Part shown: one piece after another, positions 22,614 through 50,849 of the stretch
Layout of the letters: each line of letters opens with the position of its first letter
Position numbering within the stretch: position 1 is the stretch's first letter
Assembly: GCA_900088475.1 (NCBI GenBank)
Contig: FLMG01004374.1
Coordinates: 124,001-188,000 of the forward strand
DNA from: Hyphochytrium catenoides
Lineage: Eukaryota > Protista > Hyphochytriomycota
Direction of reading: 5' to 3'
DNA: 64,000 nt
Notes under the pieces: model-generated
Told to the model about the DNA's origin: nothing
Databases searched by the model: none
The model's input: only the letters and a program-made list of their open reading frames with translations
Position numbers and translations under genes: made by a program

Positions 22614-24149
22614 ATGGACGGCGAGGTGATGACTGGGGTTGATACGAAGTCTGGCCTGAATGGCTCAGGGAGGATATACACGGACGAGCTGGGTACCTGC
22701 TATCATGCGGAGCTTCTACAACAAAACAAACTAATCTACAAAGAGAAGACATACACCATGCAGTTGTTAGAGGGTCTTGATACCAAGAACCAAGGGGGAA
22801 AACGTCAGAAGGCCACCGAGGGCTCAAAAGGCAAAGACTTCTGGGTGTTCCTGAAGTGGCAGGAGACAGGTTCGGCAACTGAACATAAGCTCCTTGGCCC
22901 GTGCGACTTCACGAGTGCCCAAAAGCTCTTTGAAAAGCGATTCCAAGAGTTGAGTGGAAGGCCATGGATTCGGGTCTTGACTAGCCCTAGAGCACAAGCA
23001 GAAGTTGCTATTCCTGGCAAGTTTGAAGTCGTGGGCAGGGAGATAGACGCAATCCGCATAAACCTGACCTCCAACGTTCCCACATGGCAGTATTATCAAG
23101 CCGATGACCGCTATGGCCAACCTGCGGGTTGGTACAGTTATGACGCCGGGATGGCAAAGAAAATTGAGAAACTGTACCAATGCTACTTGCACAATCCCAA
23201 GCTCAACTTGAGATTCCTCGCAGCTGGAGGGGTCACGCATCAAATTGATCTGAGGGGCATGAAGGCAACCAGGACGGACTCTGGGGATGCCCGAAGTCTT
23301 CGACGAATGGTTAAATTAGTGCAGACCCAGAGTATGGGAAGCCAGACTGCATCTGAAAGAGCCTCAGGGCGGAAGGCCACTCAAGAAAAAGCTGCTCACG
23401 AGCCTACCGTCGAACTAGCTTCTTCAGTAAAGAGAACGACGTTGAATGACACCCCCATTCATGGCTCTCCTACCAGCTCGGGTCGCCCATCCCTAGCTGG
23501 AACGTCCGGCCGTCCTTCCCTTGGAATACGTCAAGGATCATCTTCTAGTTGGTCTCTCAAGAGTCAGGAGTCTAGCTCTTCTGACGGCGAAGGAGGCAAG
23601 CGTGTTCGTTTTTCTGCAAAGACTGAGGAGATCAGGGACACCCTCCCCACTGCTCTCAAAAGAAAGCCTAGCAGTGGTTCACCTACGAAGGGTTGCCTCC
23701 GTAAAAGTTCTAGCCTAGAAAGTACTGAGTGCGACGGGACAAAACAGGTCCCCAAAAATTTTCGACTTAACGCTTCTGGGTCTGCAGACTTTGCATTGCC
23801 AGTCGAGCTGCGAGGTGCACGGGTAGTGGCTGTCGGCGGCGATCTATACAGTTCAGTGCTGCTCAAAACAAACGCAGGCAAGAGAGATCAGTTTTACTTA
23901 ATGCAGGTGATTGATGATGGTTCCCATTACTTTCTCTGGACAAGGGCTGGTTCTCTTGGCTCCCTAGGGCGTGGCACACTTCACGGGCCCATGGCTATGG
24001 ACAAGTGCATAGAAGACTTCCGAATAAAATTTGAGGACAAGACTGACAACATATGGGCTGGACTAGATAACCCAATGTATAAGTGGAACTCAGGATCTTA
24101 CCGGCTGTGTGGGCCCTCGCCCAATCTGACGAAGTCTAATGCGCCCTGA
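22614..24149 (+). CDS. Intronless WGR-WWE-WGR domain protein without a PARP catalytic domain (511 aa)
   Basis: N-terminal WGR-like domain (YHAELLQQN..KTYTMQLLE..FWVFLKW..AQKLFEKRFQELSGRPW); WWE (PTWQY..GWYSYD..IEKLY..HQIDLRGMKATRTDSGDARSLRR); Ser-rich linker; C-terminal WGR-like domain (YSSVL..DQFYLMQVI..YFLWTRAGSLG..FRIKFEDKTDNIW). Confidence 0.82.
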   Translation: MDGEVMTGVDTKSGLNGSGRIYTDELGTCYHAELLQQNKLIYKEKTYTMQLLEGLDTKNQGGKRQKATEGSKGKDFWVFLKWQETGSATEHKLLGPCDFTSAQKLFEKRFQELSGRPWIRVLTSPRAQAEVAIPGKFEVVGREIDAIRINLTSNVPTWQYYQADDRYGQPAGWYSYDAGMAKKIEKLYQCYLHNPKLNLRFLAAGGVTHQIDLRGMKATRTDSGDARSLRRMVKLVQTQSMGSQTASERASGRKATQEKAAHEPTVELASSVKRTTLNDTPIHGSPTSSGRPSLAGTSGRPSLGIRQGSSSSWSLKSQESSSSDGEGGKRVRFSAKTEEIRDTLPTALKRKPSSGSPTKGCLRKSSSLESTECDGTKQVPKNFRLNASGSADFALPVELRGARVVAVGGDLYSSVLLKTNAGKRDQFYLMQVIDDGSHYFLWTRAGSLGSLGRGTLHGPMAMDKCIEDFRIKFEDKTDNIWAGLDNPMYKWNSGSYRLCGPSPNLTKSNAP

Positions 24150-25159: not shown

Positions 25160-28100
25160 ATGGAGAGGGAGGAGCTTTCTGGAGATGAGGGAACCAGAGT
25201 ACTCCCATCCCTAGGTCCATTCTCCTTGTCAACTCCTACCGTCAAGCGCGGGCCACTACCGCCCTCATCAAATGGTGATGGTCTCAAGTGCCCTCCCATC
25301 CAGGTTGCGGCTCCCATAGAGACCAGGGGTACAGCCAAGCCCCTTAAGAAGCAGGTAGTTCGAAACAATCCACAGGAACCCTCCACAGAGATCGAAAGCA
25401 ACAACTCTCCCCTTCTAGAAAGAGATTATGACGGGGCTTCGGCGAATCTTCTGACTCCGACGGGAAATGAGGAAGAAGCCAAGCATGACTCGGCCCCAGC
25501 AGAGCTTACAGCGGAGGGAGAAGGGCGGGAGATCAAACCGTCCATTGATCTCGCCCTTCTTTCACAAACTATTGATACTCTTTCAGCCAAAATTAACAGC
25601 CTTGAAGAAAAGCTGAAGGAGGAAGAAAATGAGCTCACTCACCCATGGAACGGCCAACATGGCACTTCTCCAACATCCAGACCTAAAACTCAACCAACGA
25701 ACCTTCAACGTCTTCATGCGGAGCAGGCAGCTCTCAATGAACGGCGTCGTCGGCTCCAGCAGTCACGTCAGCTTTATACGCGTAGCGGGCTCGAGGAAGT
25801 GAAGAAAGAGACCCGAGAGATGCATCCGGAGCAGTCGTTGGACGAGGATGTGTTTGGGCCTGATCCCGACGGAGAGATTAATCAACGTCTTAGAGACTTC
25901 CGTCGTGTCCGATTGTCACTTTCGGCCGTACAGAAAGTACAAAGCTGGTGGCGGATGTTGAAGCCTCTCCGTGTCTTCAAAAGATATCTACGAAGACGGC
26001 GGGAGGCTAGGCGTAAAGCGTTTAGCATGATTGTGACCAGATGTAAGGCTTTGAGACTCACGAGGCGGTCTTTTAAAAGAAAAACCTTAGCGGCACTTAA
26101 AAGAGCTGTAATTGTCAGCAGACAAGAAAGGAAGAGGAAGTATGAGCTGGTGGAGAGAGTCTTCAACCGCTCGCCAGAAGTTCACAAAAAGACCTGGATA
26201 ACAAGACTCTTCCTTACCTTCCAGCTGAAAGAGCGGAAGATAGCAGAACCTACGATGACTCACCAGGAATTAGGGCAAGTTGGACAAGTGGTATCAAGCT
26301 CCCAGTCCTTATACAGGTCCAAGAACCGCCATGAGGAGCTGGCTGGTCTGGTCGACAGAGCAAAGCTGACTGTTCTGAAGTTTCTGGTGGGGGCCTGGTC
26401 CGACTACAGTGTAATGAAGAAGCGGAGAAGGTTGGAAGCCCAGACCTGTCTAGTAAGAGCGTTCAGGAGAGCTTTCTCCGTTGAGATGATGTGGCCTACT
26501 GAGAGGTAAGGATAACTCGGACTAACGTTGAAAGCAGCGGTATAGCAACGTGATAGGCATTTACAGTTTTAGAGGAAATGTAGGCGAACAGAGGGAGGGA
26601 GGAGCGAACTACAGACAGGCAGACAGAGAGATTACTATAATTTCCAAGCAACATCGTGGTAACCAGGTAGTACTAGCTTTGACACCCCCGCCACCTACTT
26701 GATTGCAGGCTCTACGTTCTTTTCACTATGTGGAAGCGGTGGTCTAAGTATAAGATATCAGAGAGGAAGGGCCTTCCAACGCCAGTCTTCCCCCATCGAC
26801 TGCGTGAATGGGACGTATGGCTCGTGCTGTTCAGTGAGAGAGTCCAAAGACTGGATAAGGCCAGCGCAATGTTCCCGCGCGCTCGGCTCAGGCGATACTT
26901 TAGGGCGGTCAAGAGACTGGTGCGGCTTACTCGAGAGAAAGCAGAGAAGGAGGATCGGGCTGCAGCCCATTACAAAGTAAGGCTTCGAGTCCAAGTCATA
27001 CAAGGATGGAACAGATACTGCAGAGCGCGGGGAAAGTCCAGGTAAGCATACTATCAACTATTGCGGCCTCACAATGCGTTGAATTTATGTTCACTCACTC
27101 TAACTCTAACTCTCCTCTGCGAATACCCTCTCCTTGTCCGTCTTCTGTCGAACGAGGAGATCTATCCCCTAGTCTTGCAACGTTCTTTTACTCTTTTTCA
27201 ACAAGCCTCCACTTATTGCCTTGGTCACAGACGTTTATTTTACAAATGCTGGAAAAGCTGGAGGCAGTACGCCCCAATGCATAAGAAGTATAGGAGGTAT
27301 CGTCCTACTGTTCTCGACTGACTCAGAGGCGAGTCTTCTATGTGCTCCTTTTATCTTTTTTTGATATTGTTGTCGCTCAGCCTAAGTTAGATCAGTACAT
27401 CCCTCTATCGCACCTGAGAAGCCACTTGTAGATCTACGCGTCTTCCTCTAGTCTCCTCTTGTCTGGGTGTGATCCGCCTCCTATCTCATATTGCTCCTTC
27501 TTTTGTTCCTCTCTAACTCCATTCACAGCACAATGCAGTCATTCATTATCTCGAAGAGAAAAGCTTACGTATGGGGTCTATGGACTCAATGGCGGAAGAG
27601 ACTTGTCGGAAGGCAAATGCTTCACCTGCACACTACTCACCGCCTTCAGCAGACTTCAAATGCAAGCACTTTGGCATCTTTTTCTCTTTCTCTTTGGGCA
27701 GGGAGAGACTTAGACGCTCGATACCTCCACTGCTGGTGGTCCATGAAGGTTTTCTTAGTGAAGAGAAGGATATGGAATCACTTCGTGCTTCTCCATCAAA
27801 AGGCAGTAGCTCAACATTACGCTTTCCTTACCTTTCACCGATGGAGGGTTGGGACGAAATACAAGCTTTTTAGCAGGGAAAATGATAGCGAGGAAGAGGA
27901 AGACGAAAGAGACAGTGAGGATTCTAGGTCGTCCTCATACTCCATGAAAAGAAAATCCTCGGTGATTTCTGCGCGTCTCTCTCTTGCCTACGCTATCACG
28001 GCCAGGAGAATGAAGCTTAAGCTACCTCCGGGAGCACAGGAAGACCTTCTTCGGTATCAGTCCTTTTACTCTCCCGAAGCGGAAAGTTTAGAGAGGGGAC

Positions 28101-31100
28101 TTGAGAAGCTGAAGGCCCTGCGGCTTAACCCTGATATAGAGATGGGTCAGAGAACAGAACGAACAGACAAACTTAGCATGCTTTATACTTTCTTCACTTA
28201 CAACGCAGAAATCTCTATGCAGGATTACGGCCTGACCATATCTCTCCCTTCAACCAAGTCGAAGAAGTCTGCTACTCCACCTCCAGACCGAGAGATCCTT
28301 CCATCCCAATCTCCCCCGCAAGGAAAAGCTAGTTTTGACAGGAAAAGTGACGAAAAAGGAGCAGTAAAAAAAGGGAGCTCGGCGGTACAGCATACCGGGA
28401 AAGAGGCGAAGATGGCGAAATCCGATGGAGTGGCCCGGAAGGCACCATCGGAAACGCCTCCTGCAGAACCTTCAACGCCTTCATCGACTGTGACACCTTC
28501 GATTGAATCTCTAATCACCGCAAACCTCACTACCATCCTGCGCTTTATATCTCTCCCTGATTTACTTCCGTGTTCGTTCCTCGAGTGTGGAGAGAATACC
28601 TCTCTCCACGATGCAGCGGACACACAGGATAACTTGAAGCTCCAGGAACTTATCCTGTCCGGGTCAGAGGTGAATGCTTGGAACCAAGATGGGGACACTC
28701 CCCTCCATCTAGCTGCTCGCCACTGGAGCGGGAAAGCTCTGCGAACGGTCATCCACCTCCTCCAAGCTGGAGCTGATTGCACTCTTACCAACGCCTGTGG
28801 TATGACTGCCGCTGATATGGCAACCAATGCCGCCGTCAAGGTACAGAGCCGGAGCATCAAAGAAGGAAGCAAGGGGAAACAGTGCATAAAGACTTATCAG
28901 CGACACCTTCTGTTTTTCTGCTTCTCTATGCTAGTATCCTTCATCGCTTCTTAGCTAATGCTCGACGTACACCAATCCTTGCTGGAAGGATAACTTGATC
29001 TTTACAATCTGAGCTCTCTTTCCCCTCTTCCTTTGGGCCTCGTTCGTCATGCCTTACTCTGTGTTCTCCCTTGTTATCTTCTTGTAGCTTCTCCTACAAC
29101 TGCACCAGCAGCGGCTGCTAACGATGAAGTTTACTAGGAAAGAGAAGATCTGGTACGGCACGAGGTTACTATGCTTAATAATCTTCCAACCTATTAGTTC
29201 TCCTGGGACTCTCCTAACCTAATTCCCTCTCCTGCCGCACAAAGGTTCATCCTTAAGCAACGGGGCCAGCTGAGACATCTTGGTGGTCAAAGCCTCTGGA
29301 GGTTGGTGACAGGTCTTCGTGTTGTGCTCCATTCGAAGAAGTCTTGGAATGGGACCCAAACAGGTAAAATCTCCCTTCTAGATTTCTCCCTAGGGTCATC
29401 CTTCGCATTGTAGATATCACAGATGCTTACGTTTGCTATGTGTTCCCGATATCCTCTCTCTCTCATCTCACTTTTTCTTTCGCCCAGCACGGTCAGGGAC
29501 TCATGTCCGGCTGATGTCGAGCATCGCAACAGTCGTTCAGTTACTAGCAGGACCAGGAAACGCTGGAAGAGATGGGCAGCAGGGCGAAAGGGTCAAGGAG
29601 GAGAAAGAGGATAAATTGCTGCTGCAATATGATCCTGAATTCGAGCAAGCGTTGCGGACCTTTTTTGTGGGAGAGGACAAGCCCAAGCCATCGTTGAAGA
29701 AGGTCTGGAACAAAATCACTTGATACAGAGGATCTATGCGACTTACTCTGCGTTTCAGTGACTATGTCGACAACTCTCTTAGCGCCGTCTCCTCTTTCTT
29801 CTCTTGTCGGAAGTTCCAACCAAAGCTGTCATATTTTTGACCTGTCTTTTAAGTTGATTATCTATATCCAGCAATGGTCATGCGCTAATATATTATCCGT
29901 GAATCCTCTTCGTCTAACCTGGTCAGGCATGGGATTATTGTTTATCTGTCACAGCCGCAAATTTTCATGGCACTCACCAGTTGAGTGAGCAGCTTGATGT
30001 CATCTCCAAAGACCGATGGGTGCGTGGGCGACCACACTGATGCTTCAGTTTTTATGCTGCTTACTATGTGTTATCTGCCGCATTTATTGGCTCACTTTGT
30101 GCCTTCTACTCTTCTATGCGAATACTCCTTCTCCAAGGTAGCTTGGGGGTGGGGGTGGGGAGTCCCACCGATAACCAAAGCTAGTCCTATACTCCCCTTT
30201 CGCACTCCTTGCATACTGCCTCTCTGGGTTCATTTGTCTCCAGGACCCACATCTGCCGTATTGAGTGATGACATATCCTACGTTGCCTTGCCATCGTTGT
30301 CCTTCTCACATTTATATAGGAGAAACTGCAACAGCGATGGGAGCATGAAAAGAAAGTTATTACTTCGGTTATCCTCAAGCAGACGCGGCAGGAAATAGAA
30401 TCAGCAATTAAGGAGGTTGTCTCGTTCAGCAGAGGAAGTAATAAAAAGGATGGCAGAGGGGTCGGAGAGGGAGGAGGTGATGGTAGGAAAGCAGGAGATC
30501 AGAAGGAGGATTTCATGCGCCATTTCAATACCAAGGGGCGAAAAGCAGAGATAGATGAAGCTGACCAGACGTCTGCGCCGGATAAAGGGAAGGAGAAGAA
30601 AAGAAAGGAAGAGGACAGGCCCTGGAGAAGAAAGCCTGCAGGAGCTTCCGCGAAGAAAGGGGAGAAAGGAGGGAGCCCGTCCTCCGCCAAGAACACCCCT
30701 CCTTCTCCAAAGAAGGCTGAGCAGTCAGCAACAGTAAGTTCCTCGTACCGTCTTCGGAGTTTTGGGCCTGCTATCTTACCGGTGTCTCTCCTTGTCAAAT
30801 TGTTTGCGTCGTTAAAGACGCAGCGCAGGTCGGGTGAGATAGTCCTGGATGTCTTTCCCGAACCATTGCGCCAAAATGCGAAGTATAACAGGGCTGAGTT
30901 GCAGTTCTCGAGCACAGAGCAGGTTCAGGAATTCTGCCAAGAGCTCTCTAGTAGAGTCAATAAGTTGAATGGTGCGACACCAACGAAGAGGGCGAGGAGG
31001 AGAAGTGGTAGTCTCTGGTTTAGCCTCCCTGGATCTGGGCCTGTGTCGTATGAACATGTAGTATCTGTTCTTGCTCTTTGCCATGAGTAAGGTCTCTTGC

Positions 31101-42900: not shown

Positions 42901-43940
42901 ATATATCTAATAGCTGGTTTTTTTACGCTCTCCCGGCACATTGAGCTCTATTTATTGGTAGCCTAAGTATCCTTATTGTCTGGATCCACTTTCAATTAGC
43001 TCCATCAAGCGATGCCGTTAATCTTCAGACTACCAAAGGACCTAATGGAGCGAGCCATCCTCGCCGCAACGAGAAGCTCGTATTCAACTCCCGGTCAATT
43101 AATCTATCTCATACACATTGTCCAGAACTGTCCCTTAAGAGCTACTGTCTCTGGACTCAATCAATGCTTCGCTATGGAAGATACTTTCGGAAGGTCTCCC
43201 TCTATCTATTTATCTACTCCTGTCTACTGCAGCGCAACAACTCTTTTCTTGGGTGGGGGTAGGCGTAGTAAAACTTAGGTTTTCCCGGGCTGTGGGACTG
43301 CGCTCTCACCATTCGATCGCATGTCAGTATCCTTTAAAATCTGTGTTAGCCCCTAACTAGGCCTTTAACCACCATACGTGCCTGCCTCCTTCAGCGACGC
43401 TTTCAGGGAGGCGATCGAGCTGTTGTCCGTCTTAGAGACCCCTCCTCGCATGATCATACGGACCCTGATTCTTTGCCTCACCCGGTATCCAGTGCTTAAG
43501 GTAAAATTACCTCTCATCCACTAAACCCATTATGACAAGTAAACGGCAAAACTAACGCAGTACCTTTATCTTTGCGCTCCTCTACCTTGTGGGATGGCAG
43601 GGCGTAGTCATCGACGCCTTACGGGCACTGGCGAGCAGAGAAGTATGGCAACAGCGCGAGCTATGGGAAGGCTTCAAGAAGTGTTGTTTGGTAGGTTCAA
43701 TATCAATAAATTCTTTAGCGGAAGTAGCATCTTAATGGCCGAGTCCCAGATACTGGGGCCTTCCTCTTCTGCCACACTCGTCCTTCCAGATCAGCAGAGA
43801 GAACAGATCATGGACCTATTCTCAGAGAACCAGCAGCAAGGTCTTTCTTAAGAGAGCTGGTGCTCACTCAGACGGCAACAAGGTTGACCGGCTACCTAGG
43901 ACTGTGGCTCACGCGTACCAAGGCTCAAAGATGTACCTGA
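39965..43940 (+). CDS. SYMPK: Symplekin / Pta1-like mRNA 3'-end processing scaffold
   Basis: HEAT-like N-terminus (VVQLLNDA..EKLQLLATVREI..D..VKARLFCLNFFED); central SLGLLALRDLVLLRP and ERAEREAAI; C-terminal PPRMIIRTLILCLTRYPVLK..VWQQRELWEGFKKCC, matching the symplekin C-terminal pattern. The last exon is approximate. Confidence 0.82.
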
Positions 43941-44227
43941 AAGGAATCTTGAAAGGACAAATTGACGACGGAAAATTAGGATATCAAGGTAGAAGACGAT
44001 GAGACTTCCTATTGACTTCCTGGCTACCTCCTTCACAAGTACTAGTCCCCGCTAGTGGGCTTTGACCCATGTATATTATTCAAGAGCGGAACCATATAGT
44101 TACTAGGGTAGTAGTCACTGCTAGTGTGCTAAGATTTATAAAGTGAATATGCGGCCCTGAAATAGATATGCAGTTAGAACGCGCATTCAAGAGGTCACAG
44201 GGTGGCTTGCTGCTCCTCAAGCAAAGG

Positions 44228-46061
44228 TCAAGCTGCACCATCCACAGAAGCCGTCTCATGCCTTTTGTCGTCGTCTTCTCCCTCACTGTCTTCTTTGTTG
44301 TTCTCATCGTCATCGTCGTCGTCTTCTTCGGCCTAACGATGACGGTCAGAGACGAACACATCATGGGTCCGACAACGATAGAATCGAACCTTAGTTGGCG
44401 GACCGGGCAATCTGTACATGGTGTCTCGTTCCTCCAGCATTCTTTCTTCAACCAGCTCCTGCACAGCCTCGCCTAGGAGCTAGACGTAGGGAATAGTTGT
44501 CATATCTTCCAGCATCAGAGACTAATTGCCAGGCGAGACAACCTAGGCTTACATGGGATAGCTTCATCATATAGAGGAGGTGGGGAAATTTCCTACGAGC
44601 CAGCTTTATGATCCGTGAAAGCGAAAGCCCACGGCGAGGATTGCCAGCTTCTCGAATTGTTTCTTGGACGATTTCCACGAATTGATTGTGAATATCAGGT
44701 CGCGACGAGCGCAAACCCTTTCCAAGCTTGACAAGGTTCCGCCACTTGTCCTACGACGTTATCTGTGTTAGAGAGTATGCGACCAGCCTATTCGAACTCT
44801 GACAGCAAGGTCATCTGCGTCGACACTTTTGTCCACTTGTATTCCACAATATCCTCCTGACCACGATAGTACTCCCTACCTTCATGTCCACATTCCTCCG
44901 CCCATGCTGCTGAAGCACGGGTCCCAAACTGGGATCATGAAGGATTGCACTCCATTGGCCTTTCCCATAAATTTTCACTCCTTCAACAAGAGCGTGGACT
45001 TCCTCCTCAGTCCAGGCTATACGAGAGCGTGACGGCGAGTCTGCGTCAACAATCTTTCTTGACTTACGTGTCGCCCTAATTTTCAGGATATCAGCCGAGG
45101 AAGACGGAGAAGATAAACTATGCCTTACCTTTTGGATGGGATAGGACCTGACCGCTTATTGGGGCTTCGTCGCTTACGACCGGGTCCCTCCTCCTCATCC
45201 TCTGTTTCTTGGCTGTCATCAGCGTAATTCAGACCCTCATCCTCTTCGTCTCCGTGGGGTTTCTTCGGTGTCTCTTGTGATCTAGGAGATTGTTGAGATG
45301 CTTGTGCCCAGAGATTTCTGCGCTGTCGAATCCTGTCCTGGTCATGCTTCAGCAGCCACCTCCATTTATCCTAGGTCACTGTCATTAGATTCTCACCATC
45401 CAAGAGTAAAAGAGCCTCTATCCAACCTTAAGGTCAATGTTGCTTCTTCTGCCCAACTTTGCGCCGTAATCCTCATCTGCCAGAATCATCCTCCAGTTAC
45501 CTAGTCCATATTCTTCGATTGCATCCAAAAGTGCTTCCACCTCGTCATCATCCCATCGTGTCCGTTGCTGTCTAGATGGGGTAACAGCAGGACTCTCACC
45601 ACCTCTGCTCCTTCGCTTTCGTTGAGTAGGAGTAGAGTACGAAACCTTCTTCGCGGGAGATTGCTTTAAGGGGCTACTATATATAACATTCTTAGGGGTC
45701 TTCTCTCGGCGAGGTATGGGAGACCTGCGTGGTGGACTAAGAGCTGAGAGATCATATTGCTTGGAGAGAATCCGCCATCGGTCCTGGAAACAAACGGCAT
45801 TAGTACTTGCAGGTTTACCTACGCCAGGCAAATGTGGAAAACCCGACTCACTTTAAGCTGAATGTTCGACTTCTCTGCAAGCACGGCGCCGAGCTCTCTA
45901 TCCTTCAGTATGTTTGCCCAACATCCATAACTATCCCCATACTTCTTCCAGCCATGAAGGAGGGCTAAGTCTTCCGCCTTCGTCCACCTCTTTCTCTTGC
46001 GGTGACTATCTTCATCTTCATGAAAGCCCGGTAGACCATCTTTCGAGCCCGTAGTACCCAT
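44228..46061 (-). CDS. Protein with three telobox (TRF-like) Myb domains, a C-terminal linker-histone globular (H15/GH1)-like domain and an acidic tail
   Basis: Myb1 RKRWTKAED..WANILKD..SNIQLK|DRWR; Myb2 RTRWDDDEV..GLGNWRMIL..RSNIDLK|DKWR; Myb3 RIAWTEEEV..GKGQWSAIL..RRNVDMK|DKWRNL; then FVEIVQETIREAGNPRRGLSLSRIIKLARRKFP..LLGEAVQELVEERMLEERDTMYRL. Stop TGA at 44228-44230. A 5' extension to ~46550 is possible. Confidence 0.88.
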
Positions 46062-46811
46062 ACCTCCACAGCGAACGTTAGAACACTATTGCGATCAAAG
46101 TCTCTAAATCTCTTTTCAAGAAAAGGCTTCCTGGCACTAGATGAGCTATTGTGGCTGGAAAATAAGATAGTGACAGAGATTTGAATTTCGGAGATTCTGA
46201 TCACTTTCTTGTACGACCTGTAGAACGGGTTGAATTGTCATTGGACTCTGAAATGGGGAAGAGAAGGGACATTTTGCGGGAAAGCCAGAGCTTCAAGGCT
46301 TTTATGTACAACAACGACGAACCACCGTTACTTGTCGTAGTTCCATGGGTGTATCGTTTGGATTTGTGCCAATTTTTGGGAACAGGGTTTGTCAATTCTA
46401 AGTTTGTTTGAGTAAATACAGGTACTGTACTTGTACTTGTTCCTACTTGTTGGTGCGGCATCGTCCCATCCGTTACTGGGGCCGCCACTTGCAGGACCAG
46501 AAACTAACCGAGTGAGTGGAGGTACGGCTGCACCATTGGCATCATGAAGCGCTGCGTTACCTCGTGGGCCGGGAGCAGAATACGATTCTAATCACCGCAC
46601 TAGCTCAACATGAAGGTGCAGGGCCACTGCGGTGGTCAATCTGTGTACTGCGTCTTTGAGCTTATAGTCCTGCCATCGGCTGCAAGAAAGCCCTGCTTGC
46701 GGCAGTTTGTTATCTACCCTATCCGGCACAGTTCGGAAGAGTCAAATACTCGTGAGGACAATGCTAGTGTGAAGATTTGAAGAAGGAGAGTTGGCTAATC
46801 AGACTTAGGCC

Positions 46812-48760
46812 ATGGCAGACGGTGCCAATCCCACGATGGCTTCAGTGCCAAGTGGTGGAATGGTCAAGCAGGCCCCAGTAGCTATTGAAGATCTCTATGC
46901 GCCTCTGCTACTCGTCGCGCTGACTGGTTACTGCTCGAGCCTCTACCTTGTACATAGAGCTTCTATGACGGTGGCACAATTTGCGTTTGGTATGTCACTG
47001 ATAGCCGTAATCTTTACTTTGGGTGGCCTGGTAGATTATGAGATACCAGATGAGTCACTGCGGCAGCTTCTAGGCTTGGACCCTCGCTTTGCTTATTCAA
47101 GGGTGCTGGAAGGCCAATCTGCACGGATGGCCAATTATGCTGCTAAGCTAGGCCTGCCGTCCGCTGACTCCTTTAGCTTCTTCCTGAGTACTCTACTAGC
47201 AAGCGTTGTGGGCACAGGCGTGGTGCTTACTGTCCTTTTCAAGTGTCCTGCAAATGGAGGCCCAACCGGATGCCTCAATTTACGGCAGAGGCTTCGGTCT
47301 CACAATGCATGCATACAACAAAGACTTGGTTCCTTCTCGTCAACGTACATTGTCTCTTTCGTATCCATTTTCGTCAGCGTTACCTTGAGAATCAATGCAC
47401 GTCTGAGCGGAAGCGCTATTCAGCCGGCGAATGGGTCGCATCACTGGCGGATCGTTATGTCTCCTTCTATAGCCCTAGCTATACATGCAGGAAGTTGCAT
47501 CATGGTGCTGGTATATTTTGTATTAGATCAGGTGAGACTTTGAATGGCCCTTTCACTGCGATATGGCGTGTGAGCTGACCTCTCATTTGCAGAGTACATT
47601 TATAGAACGACAGACCTACACATATATCAATGAGCCCCTACACAAGCAAGGCGGCCTGACGAATGTTGCTAGCAAGAGTGAAAGCGAGAGTTCAGCTAGT
47701 CCCATCAAAAGTGAACTTTGGTCTGACAGTCATTTGCCCAGTATGCGCTTGGCGGGGATGAGCCTCAGAAATATGGTAGGCCCTAATCTACGACCAACGT
47801 TACAATCTGCATATCTGACGGTGTTCTAGCGGCAGGATGCCATCGGAGATACGAATCACCCATCAGGTCAAGGTGGAAGATCTCTAAAAGACAGAAAGCA
47901 AAAATCTTCGTCCTCCAGGAGCTCCAGGTCAAAAACAACTGCCAAGGACAAGCGACAAAAGCTCAACAGAACACCGAGCGGAACCTCTCGATCCGACAAA
48001 GGGCGGACAGTACATAGCGATAGCGAAAAGGACGAAGTCCGTGTACCTTCTCGAAGCCCGAGACAAGGGTCAGGAGGCGCGATGTTCCTGGAAGGCAAAA
48101 TGGGTGACGAACGTATTGATACACCTCGCCAGGGGTTGCGAAGAAGGCTCCCGGGGCCGCCTTTAGAGAAGCATCGCCCTCAGGAAACTGGTGATGTGTC
48201 ACATCTAATTAGCAGTGATAGTGAAGCAGACAGCGGGAAAGAAGGAGGTGGACTCTTACCCCGCTCTTGGGCACAGAGACTTAGCCGCATGTCCATTGGA
48301 AAGTTAAATAAAGCTCCTGTCGTGGAATCAAAGGCTGTGACGGGTAAGTATATCTTTGTGGTTGTCCGAGGGCGAGAGGGGTTGACAGGTCGATATGGCT
48401 CTTTGACTATTAGGTGACGTATCGGCCCTTATTAGCAGCGACAGCTCAGAGGATGATCACAGAGCCCAAACTGCCAAGGTAAGGCAGTTGCCAATGCAAG
48501 ACAGTCAGAGACGCTTTAGGAGCTCCCAAGTTGCCGATTCGCAAGGTACGGGCGGCCTGCAAGACCAAGATTTCACCAAGAAGGTAGCTATCAGCCCTCA
48601 GCTTGAGAGTCAAGCGGCTCGGACCGCCATCGGCCTGCCGGGCAGCCCATGGTCCCGGTATATCGACAGTAGTACTGGAAAGTTTTATTATTACAATCGC
48701 CAGACAGGAGAGTCATCATGGACTGTACCGACCATGGCTACAATAGGCATGTCAATGTAA
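46812..48760 (+). CDS. Multi-pass membrane protein with a disordered cytosolic tail and C-terminal WW domain
   Basis: The hydrophobic exon 46812-47531 splices in phase through exons at ~47593-47775 and ~47830-48342 to a final exon with LPGSPWSRYIDSSTGKFYYYNRQTGESSWTVP (WW domain). Confidence 0.75.
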
Positions 48761-49211: not shown

Positions 49212-49984
49212 CTACGTACTGCTCGGAGCGATCCGTCCTTCCGCCGATGATTTGGCACTGCTTGCCGTCATTCCCCTTGCCTTGATCTTCTTGGATGCCG
49301 CCCTACAAAAACATAAACGTAATTAAAGGATAGCTCTTGCAGAGATAAGTGTCGATCTTACGCATTCTTTGGCGAAGCTCTCATCTGAACAGTTGTCATG
49401 TCGTTGGTGCTAGCTTCAAACACATCGATCCTGCCGGTAATGGCTGGTCCAAGCATCTCTCGGAGCACATAAGCGAGCAAATTTACCCAAGCGTCAACAA
49501 CCACAAAGGTCGCCTCCTTCCCCAAGCAAAAAGAGACAGCTGTGATCAGTGTCTCTAGATAAACACTGTACATCCACGGTCTAATCTTCTGCATAGCTCC
49601 TTTGGTCCTACAGTGCATCTTGCCAACTTCCCGAATTCTCCGGGATGTGCCGACAATGTCAACTGCATCAATGGTTGTAACGAACTCCATTGCAGCAGCA
49701 AGCACTTTTCCCTTTTTCTTTAGACTCCCGTCAAAAATTGCTTCGAAGGCTTTGGTTCTCTCATACAGTCGGTTGTAAAACTGGTCATAGAAGAAGACAA
49801 CGCCGGTCGTCCCGCTAATCTGCTTCTCTTTGATATTCACCCAGGATCTTCGACAGACCTCGACGACAGCGGGTGTAACCATTGGCGTGATTGGGAATGT
49901 AGGCGGAAAGTAATGTTCAACCATGGCATCTTCGCCGATATTCAGATCATCTTGTCCTCCGTCATTACTCCCTGCGTTACCCAT
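49212..49984 (-). CDS. Single-domain 3/3 globin with an N-terminal myristoylation motif
   Basis: MGNAGS start; A-helix CRRSW; B-helix FFYDQFYNRLY; CD1 Phe (AIF); proximal His in VGKMH; G-helix IRPWMYSVYLETL; H-helix VDAWVNL. A probable short last intron (49303-49360) gives a basic tail ending at 49212; otherwise the stop is at 49358. Confidence 0.88.
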
Positions 49985-50424: not shown

Positions 50425-50452
50425 CTAAGTCTAACGCTAACCCTAACCCTTA
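50425..50452. repeat. Short interstitial telomere-like array (degenerate CCCTAA/TTAGGG units)
   Basis: ctaagt-ctaacg-ctaacc-ctaacc-ctta, in 6-nt register. Confidence 0.6.
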
Positions 50453-50849
50453 TCAGGGAGAAACGTGGCCCATCCTGGCTTCGACGACCTGTGTGAGTCC
50501 TAGAATGTTCTTGGAGAGATAGGTAAGTGCCTGCAGTAAGTGGCATCTCATCCCCATCATCCATATGATAGAAAGGAGCTGACGACCCTCTTCATTGTTA
50601 CTGAGTAATTCTGGCGGAAGATGGTGGTCCATGACCCTGCCTGATCATGAAGGATGATACCATGGGGATTGATGGAGGCCGAGATGGGTGTAACCGACGA
50701 GTTGCTGAATCATGTCCTATGTGCAATGCAAGTTCTTAGGTCCGAGGGCGGAGGTGGCTACTGCTTCCTTCTACATTAAAACCCTGTTGCCGTGATGACA
50801 GTAGTAGTGTAGTAGTAGTGCTTGGGCATGAGTCATGGGGAGTCAGGAG

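Follow-up and report, generated by a model that had tools for sequence, protein, structure and literature searches.

The DNA analyzed here, a 64-kb stretch referred to below as the window, contains a predicted gene on its minus strand (46061 to 44228) that begins with an ATG at position 46061 and ends with a TGA at 44230 to 44228. Three-frame translation of positions 46400 to 44000 revealed seven predicted exons that join into one open reading frame of 1,398 nt, encoding a protein of 465 amino acids (Table 1). The ATG and TGA of this minus-strand model coincide exactly with the limits that an earlier note on this DNA had given for the locus (44228 to 46061). The architecture described there, consisting of three telobox Myb domains, a short linker, a compact helical domain, and an acidic tail, is present in the predicted product. 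Between the preceding stop and the predicted start codon there is no other in-frame ATG. All six predicted introns have GT..AG boundaries and are 53 to 129 nt long, and most of them carry a CTRAY-like branch site 10 to 25 nt from the 3' end. Intron 6 is the least certain of the six; if it were left unspliced, the protein would end 19 residues past the sequence PPTK and would lack the acidic tail. The predicted N terminus, MGTTGSK (46061 to 46041, minus strand), fits a loose N-myristoylation pattern (G2, S6), and such a signal would be unexpected in a nuclear protein that binds DNA.

TABLE 1 Predicted gene structure and protein features of the three-Myb locus (positions are those of the window; residues are those of the predicted protein)
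Feature	Positions	Strand	Remarks
Whole predicted coding region	44228..46061	minus	Seven exons joined in one frame, stop included
Exons 1-4	46061-45852, 45783-45427, 45370-45129, 45075-44880	minus	Frame changes at GT..AG boundaries
Exons 5-7	44750-44553, 44479-44390, 44332-44228 (stop included)	minus	Frame changes at GT..AG boundaries
Intron 1	45851-45784	minus	Phase 0, just before DRWR; interrupts Myb repeat 1
Intron 2	45426-45371	minus	Phase 0, just before DKWR; interrupts Myb repeat 2
Intron 3	45128-45076	minus	Inside linker 2
Intron 4	44879-44751	minus	Phase 0, just before DKWR; interrupts Myb repeat 3
Intron 5	44552-44480	minus	Splits C-terminal domain at start of presumed third helix
Intron 6	44389-44333	minus	57 nt, in frame, stop inside, donor GTTCGA
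Myb repeat 1, residues 22-77, telobox LKDRWR, basic arm KRKRW	45763..45998	minus	Pfam PF00249
Linker 1, residues 78-143 (66 aa)	45565..45762	minus	Basic, S/T/P-rich
Myb repeat 2, residues 144-197, telobox LKDKWR	45347..45564	minus	Pfam PF00249; PDB 2aje
Linker 2, residues 198-285 (88 aa)	45030..45346	minus	Acidic patch, then basic NLS-like stretches
Myb repeat 3, residues 286-344, telobox MKDKWRNL	44724..45029	minus	Pfam PF00249; PDB TRF1/TRF2/B-Myb/TBF1
Candidate winged-helix/GH1-like domain, residues 356-428	44399..44690	minus	ESM-Atlas leads, partial AF2 model
Acidic C-terminal tail, residues 429-465	44231..44398	minus	Hinges on predicted intron 6

Sequence variation at the locus was examined in the three public DNA runs that contain it, which come from one organism and two samples; their contigs were aligned to positions 43000 to 47500. 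The counts given here are those of the listed differences, with 13 further differences outside the list. Within the 1,398 nt of exon there are five listed substitutions, of which one is synonymous and four change the protein (T99A, K226E, D233E, and T366I). K226E and D233E are located in linker 2, and all five listed exon substitutions lie outside the Myb repeats. The 436 nt of intron carry three listed substitutions and two listed indels, a 1-nt deletion at 45408 (intron 2) and a 2-nt deletion at 45111 (intron 3). These are the only two listed indels in the gene span, and the remaining ones all lie upstream of the ATG. Listed variants are approximately one-third as dense in exons as in introns. 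This pattern supports the reading frame and the exon map. Polymorphism alone is no proof of purifying selection, since four of the five listed exon substitutions are nonsynonymous and the sample is small. Two contig forms that differ by 6 letters were also seen at 44423 to 44574, a segment that covers the boundary of exon 6, intron 5, and exon 5. At 46384 to 46388, upstream of the gene, 38 other letters replace 3 in a contig form that occurs in all three runs at about half depth. These contig forms suggest a heterozygous diploid or a mixed sample.

The protein had been read as containing three TRF-type Myb domains with the signatures LKDRWR, LKDKWR, and MKDKWRNL, and the domain searches agree with that reading. 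When exons 1, 2, and 4 were individually scanned against Pfam, Myb_DNA-binding (PF00249) was found in each of them, with E values of 5.2e-5 for repeat 1 (23.7 bits), 1.5e-5 for repeat 2 (25.5 bits), and 1.1e-6 for repeat 3 (29.1 bits). Compared with the PF00249 cut-off of 24.4 bits, repeat 1 scores just under and repeats 2 and 3 score above; the queries were exon pieces, and the last half of helix 3 sits in the next exon. The three teloboxes, at residues 69 to 74, 188 to 193, and 334 to 339 of the predicted protein, were read directly. The joined repeats end in NIQLKDRWR, NIDLKDKWR, and NVDMKDKWRNL, all of which fit the pattern [VI]-x-[LM]-K-D-[KR]-W-R. Across all six translated frames of the window, D[KR]WR occurs 4 times versus 0.74 expected from shuffles, and three of the four occurrences are the starts of the exons that follow repeats 1 to 3. 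Each repeat is preceded by a basic arm, and these arms resemble that of TRF1 in the PDB alignment. Pfam scans of the exon pieces found no TRFH or other dimerization family in any exon.

The repeats are 45 to 46% identical to one another in pairwise comparisons over their first 50 positions. Introns 1, 2, and 4 lie at an identical site in the three repeats, each splitting the telobox immediately ahead of its D. A search for DNA-level repeats within the gene returned short chance matches only. The shared codon boundary of these three introns, the 45 to 46% identity of the repeats, and the loss of repetition at the DNA level point to an ancient event in which a Myb unit of two exons was triplicated within the gene.

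Sequence searches of the PDB matched repeat 2 to a plant telomere repeat-binding protein (2aje) and repeat 3 to TRF1, TRF2, B-Myb, and TBF1. A profile built from all three repeats matched human TRF1 (5e-7) and also TRF2, SNAPc4, c-Myb, and plant TBP1/TRP. Its best match was the SANT domain of Chd1 (5.6e-8), over profile positions 7 to 38 only, which end before helix 3. Yeast TBF1 and Schizosaccharomyces pombe trf1 align with the full length of the profile, through position 50 and including the start of helix 3. Because the telobox is kept and the alignment with TBF1 and S. pombe trf1 is full length, the sequence assigns the repeats to the TRF/TBP type and not to the Chd1 SANT type. A SNAPc4-like multi-Myb protein was also considered and rejected; the PDB matches to it are weak, and both the teloboxes and the long linkers of the repeats speak against it.

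The two linkers between the repeats had been described as SP/TP rich, with basic and acidic character, and their composition is in keeping with that description. Linker 1 contains 16 K/R in 66 residues and 8 S/T-P sites, 4 of which are of the S/T-P-x-K/R form, and linker 2 contains 4 S/T-P sites. Over both linkers, 7 of the 12 S/T-P sites fit S/T-P-x-K/R, and the folded domains hold none. No Pfam family was found in linker 1 or in exon 3, which encodes part of linker 2. Sites of the S/T-P-x-K/R form fit the CDK consensus, and SPKK-type motifs also occur in the tails of H1 histones; for these predicted linkers, the two readings cannot be separated. The D/E-rich tail proposed earlier stands as to its composition (18 D/E in 37 residues) and is present only if the predicted 57-nt intron 6 is spliced out.

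The C-terminal domain, of approximately 73 residues, is helical and begins 11 residues after repeat 3. On exon 5 lie the final part of repeat 3, two helices, and the beginning of a presumed third helix; the remainder (helix 3 and the wing) is encoded by exon 6. The domain was searched as separate exon 5 and exon 6 pieces. With each piece alone, Pfam returned neither Linker_histone (PF00538) nor any other winged-helix family at an E value of ≤1. H1/H5 was likewise not among the PDB sequence matches of these pieces, the top matches of which were designed repeat proteins. AlphaFold2 modeling of exon 5 alone (pLDDT, 77.8) placed helices at residues 18 to 35, 44 to 54, and 56 to 62 of the piece. 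This predicted spacing is compatible with that of a GH1 fold from helix 1 through the loop and helix 2 to the beginning of helix 3. As would be expected of a model that covers two-thirds of this small domain, the partial exon 5 model gave no match at an E value of ≤0.001 with Foldseek and no match at a Z score of ≥5 with VIA-align.

ESM-Atlas features are the only positive signal for GH1. For exon 5 and for its residues 17 to 66, the nearest clusters were Linker_histone (0.77 and 0.76), followed by the winged helices of SAMD1_WH, HARE-HTH, GDS1, NFRKB, and RNase R, so that every named neighbor is a winged helix; ESM-Atlas scores of <0.9 count as leads only. The features of residues 352 to 401 lie nearest to the H1/H5 globular domain, the SAMD1 winged helix, and HARE-HTH, and the partial AlphaFold2 helix spacing is compatible. 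The domain differs from the H1/H5 globular domain in that the pieces have no profile or sequence match to it, in its near-neutral charge (12 K/R and 10 D/E), and in its wing, which would be short. Canonical GH1 domains are basic. The helix 1 pattern (aromatic-x-E-I-V-x-E-x-I), the G-x-S turn, and the terminal YRL are features that we take to recall GH1, especially that of TRB proteins. The short wing ending in YR[IL] presumably resembles that of TRB GH1 domains, and the spacing of helix 2 to the telobox presumably resembles that of TRB Myb domains; we treat these resemblances as a lead only. The compact helical domain has ESM-Atlas leads (0.77) to a GH1-like winged helix, and the split pieces have no Pfam or PDB match to one. 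We consider a GH1-type winged helix the probable identity of this domain, with reservations. The original observation is largely correct and nonrandom, and its GH1 call is plausible.

A literature search found no description of a protein that combines three telobox Myb domains with GH1, and the predicted protein was compared with the known families that come closest. The combination of Myb and GH1 seen in TRB/SMH proteins has been called plant specific, arising in streptophytes (PMC10167121, PMC11287191), and the H1 genes of Ectocarpus are stated not to be of the GH1-Myb type (PMC7784034). Like TRB/SMH proteins, the protein encoded here has a telobox-type Myb together with a compact domain, which here is a putative GH1. 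In TRB/SMH proteins, a single Myb at the N terminus is followed by a GH1 in the center and a coiled coil at the C terminus, whereas the predicted protein has three Myb repeats and a C-terminal putative GH1, and what follows the latter, judged by reading the sequence, is a 37-residue tail with 18 D/E in place of a coiled coil. Fungal Tay1/Teb1 proteins have two Myb domains described as tandem, and a single chain binds multivalently (PMC7952879, PMC4650311). They share with the predicted protein the possession of at least two TRF-like Myb domains per polypeptide and the lack of a TRFH domain, but they have no winged helix, and the three Myb repeats found here are separated by linkers of 66 and 88 residues.

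The Caenorhabditis elegans proteins TEBP-1/2 (DTN-1/2) contain three Myb-containing domains and bind duplex telomeric DNA without a classical dimerization domain; in these proteins, DNA binding is confined to the third domain, and the first two serve as a dimerization module (PMC11032478). The presence of three Myb modules and the absence of a classical dimerization domain are common to TEBP-1/2 and the predicted protein. TEBP-1/2 have one DNA-binding module and no GH1-like domain, whereas the telobox is kept in all three repeats here. TRF1, TRF2, Taz1, and Tbf1 have the same Myb type, with a basic arm and LKDKWR in the recognition helix, and TRF1, TRF2, and TBF1 are among the PDB matches. These proteins have a single C-terminal Myb and a TRFH dimer; here, there are three Myb repeats, the first of them N terminal, and no TRFH-like Pfam family. 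The predicted protein fails the defining features of each of these families and yet mixes elements of all of them.

Searches for relatives of the protein were blank. Exon 5 (66 amino acids), compared with 1.84 billion cluster representatives, gave two chance matches to repeat proteins and no relative. A word-index protein search with the 137-residue open reading frame around exon 2 returned none, within a length window that shuts out full-length relatives. No relative was recovered in two metagenome scans, one with exon 5 and one with exon 4, and exact look-ups of five neighboring open reading frames found none on record. As a control, a neighboring 511-residue open reading frame with WWE and WGR domains was subjected to the word-index search; it was also blank at 1e-5 despite its Pfam-recognized domains, and because of this the word-index blanks are weak evidence. 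Little weight can be given to the blank searches as a whole. None of the blank searches could have picked up relatives of the Tay1 type. Since no homologue was found, conservation cannot be used as an argument for the gene. The genome evidently comes from a lineage that is poorly covered in reference libraries.

The reading that we favor, with confidence slightly better than even, is that the locus is a functional nuclear gene whose product is a sequence-specific binder of duplex DNA, recognizing telomere-type (TTAGGG-like, telobox) repeats by a multivalent mechanism. From the features described above, we infer its DNA specificity, the fold of its C-terminal domain, its action at telomeric versus interstitial sites, and its phosphoregulation. 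The three TRF/TBP-type Myb repeats would be joined by linkers that are long, flexible, and basic and that carry many SPKK-like motifs, so that a single chain could contact several DNA repeats at variable spacing with no need for TRFH-type dimerization. The C-terminal domain, probably a GH1-like winged helix, would add a nonspecific contact with DNA or the nucleosome linker or would mediate interaction with itself or a partner, a role modeled on that of the H1/5 domain of plant TRB proteins. In this view, the S/T-P sites, together with the acidic tail, would serve to modulate binding. A point against the favored reading is that two of the three Myb modules of TEBP-1/2 do not bind DNA. The protein may act at chromosome ends, at interstitial teloboxes, or at both. 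The earlier note went further in proposing monomeric multivalent telomere binding, CDK control, and a place at the core of a shelterin equivalent, and these proposals are purely conjectural.

Two other functions were weighed against telomere-repeat binding. The protein could be a regulator of transcription or chromatin that acts at telobox sites in promoters and recruits chromatin modifiers, as do plant TRBs, yeast Tbf1, and S. pombe Teb1. Its nearest architectural analogue, TRB, acts for the most part on teloboxes in promoters and brings in PRC2 and JMJ14 (PMC11287191, PMC10049986). In addition, the repeat profile aligns at full length with TBF1, and a neighboring open reading frame has, ~450 bp upstream, a short telomere-like array at an interstitial site. 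Nothing in these points sets promoter regulation apart from a telomeric role, and both can hold together. A chain of three repeats with long linkers between them is better matched to long arrays than to single motifs in promoters; we regard promoter regulation as somewhat unlikely. Alternatively, the repeats could be SANT-type chromatin readers that bind histone tails or nonspecific DNA in the manner of the SANT-SLIDE module of Chd1/ISWI, making the protein a general architectural factor. Among PDB chains, the profile matches those of the Chd1 SANT domain best, Pfam HTH_CHD1_Hrp3 matches all three pieces with E values of ~3e-4 to 7e-4, and repeat 2 is net acidic (13 D/E versus 10 K/R). The HTH_CHD1_Hrp3 scores are, however, under the family cut-off, and the Chd1 matches span only positions 7 to 38, whereas TBF1 and S. 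pombe trf1 reach position 50. All three repeats also keep a recognition helix of the LKD[KR]WR type and a basic N-terminal arm, and we judge a SANT-type reader to be improbable.

The remaining alternative concerns the gene itself, in that the model might be partly wrong, with the C-terminal domain and tail not joined to the Myb repeats, or the locus might be untranscribed or decaying. The public listing contains no RNA run, no protein of the locus or of the five neighboring open reading frames is on record, the GTTCGA donor of the in-frame intron 6 is unusual, four of the five listed exon substitutions are nonsynonymous, and the myristoylation-like MGTTGSK N terminus is odd for a nuclear protein. 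On the other hand, six canonical GT-AG introns give a single frame over seven exons, and three of these introns occupy the identical position in three homologous repeats. Exon 5 holds the repeat 3 telobox together with helices 1 and 2 of the C-terminal domain, which ties the two parts physically to each other, and the listed indels are absent from all exons. A defective model or gene is, in our judgment, very improbable.

To our knowledge, duplex telomere-binding proteins have yet to be described for most protist lineages. The known solutions to duplex telomere binding are diverse and include a TRFH dimer with one Myb, the tandem Myb domains of Tay1, the three modules of TEBP, and the Myb-GH1 combination of plant TRB proteins. 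If our preferred reading of a multivalent telomere-repeat binder is true, a single chain with three intact teloboxes and possibly an H1-like domain would be a further solution, and the three-Myb protein would be a ready bait for the end protection complex of this organism. A GH1 fold, if confirmed, would challenge the view of Myb-GH1 proteins as plant specific. A more far-reaching possibility is that the pairing of telobox Myb and GH1 arose independently outside plants, with the Myb triplicated, in what would be the principal protein binding duplex telomere repeats in a little-sampled lineage. We offer this as a tentative and, on present grounds, unlikely idea; if true, evolution would have linked the recognition of telomere repeats with an H1-type nucleosome-linker module on at least two occasions. 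If the GH1 fold fails, the protein would be one more multi-Myb telobox protein, its C-terminal domain being unassigned, and the architecture would be less remarkable if it were common in unsampled proteomes.

The surroundings of the gene were also examined. Scans of the whole 64-kb window for tRNAs and Rfam families gave no match. Among the 17 open reading frames of at least 150 amino acids that were scanned, only two contained a Pfam family. One is an ankyrin-repeat open reading frame at 27491 to 28954. The other is the 511-residue open reading frame at 22614 to 24149 (plus strand), with its WWE (E value, 5.6e-7) and WGR (E value, 4e-10) domains; Pfam found no PARP catalytic domain inside this open reading frame, which could represent the N-terminal exon of a PARP-like gene. 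An interstitial telomere-like array of ~3.5 TTAGGG units, with two mismatches, lies at 50430 to 50455 and contains two overlapping 12-mer matches versus 0.21 expected. It is this array that sits ~450 bp upstream of a minus-strand open reading frame of 208 amino acids (49358 to 49984), and it is a possible telobox-type promoter element and candidate target of the three-Myb protein.
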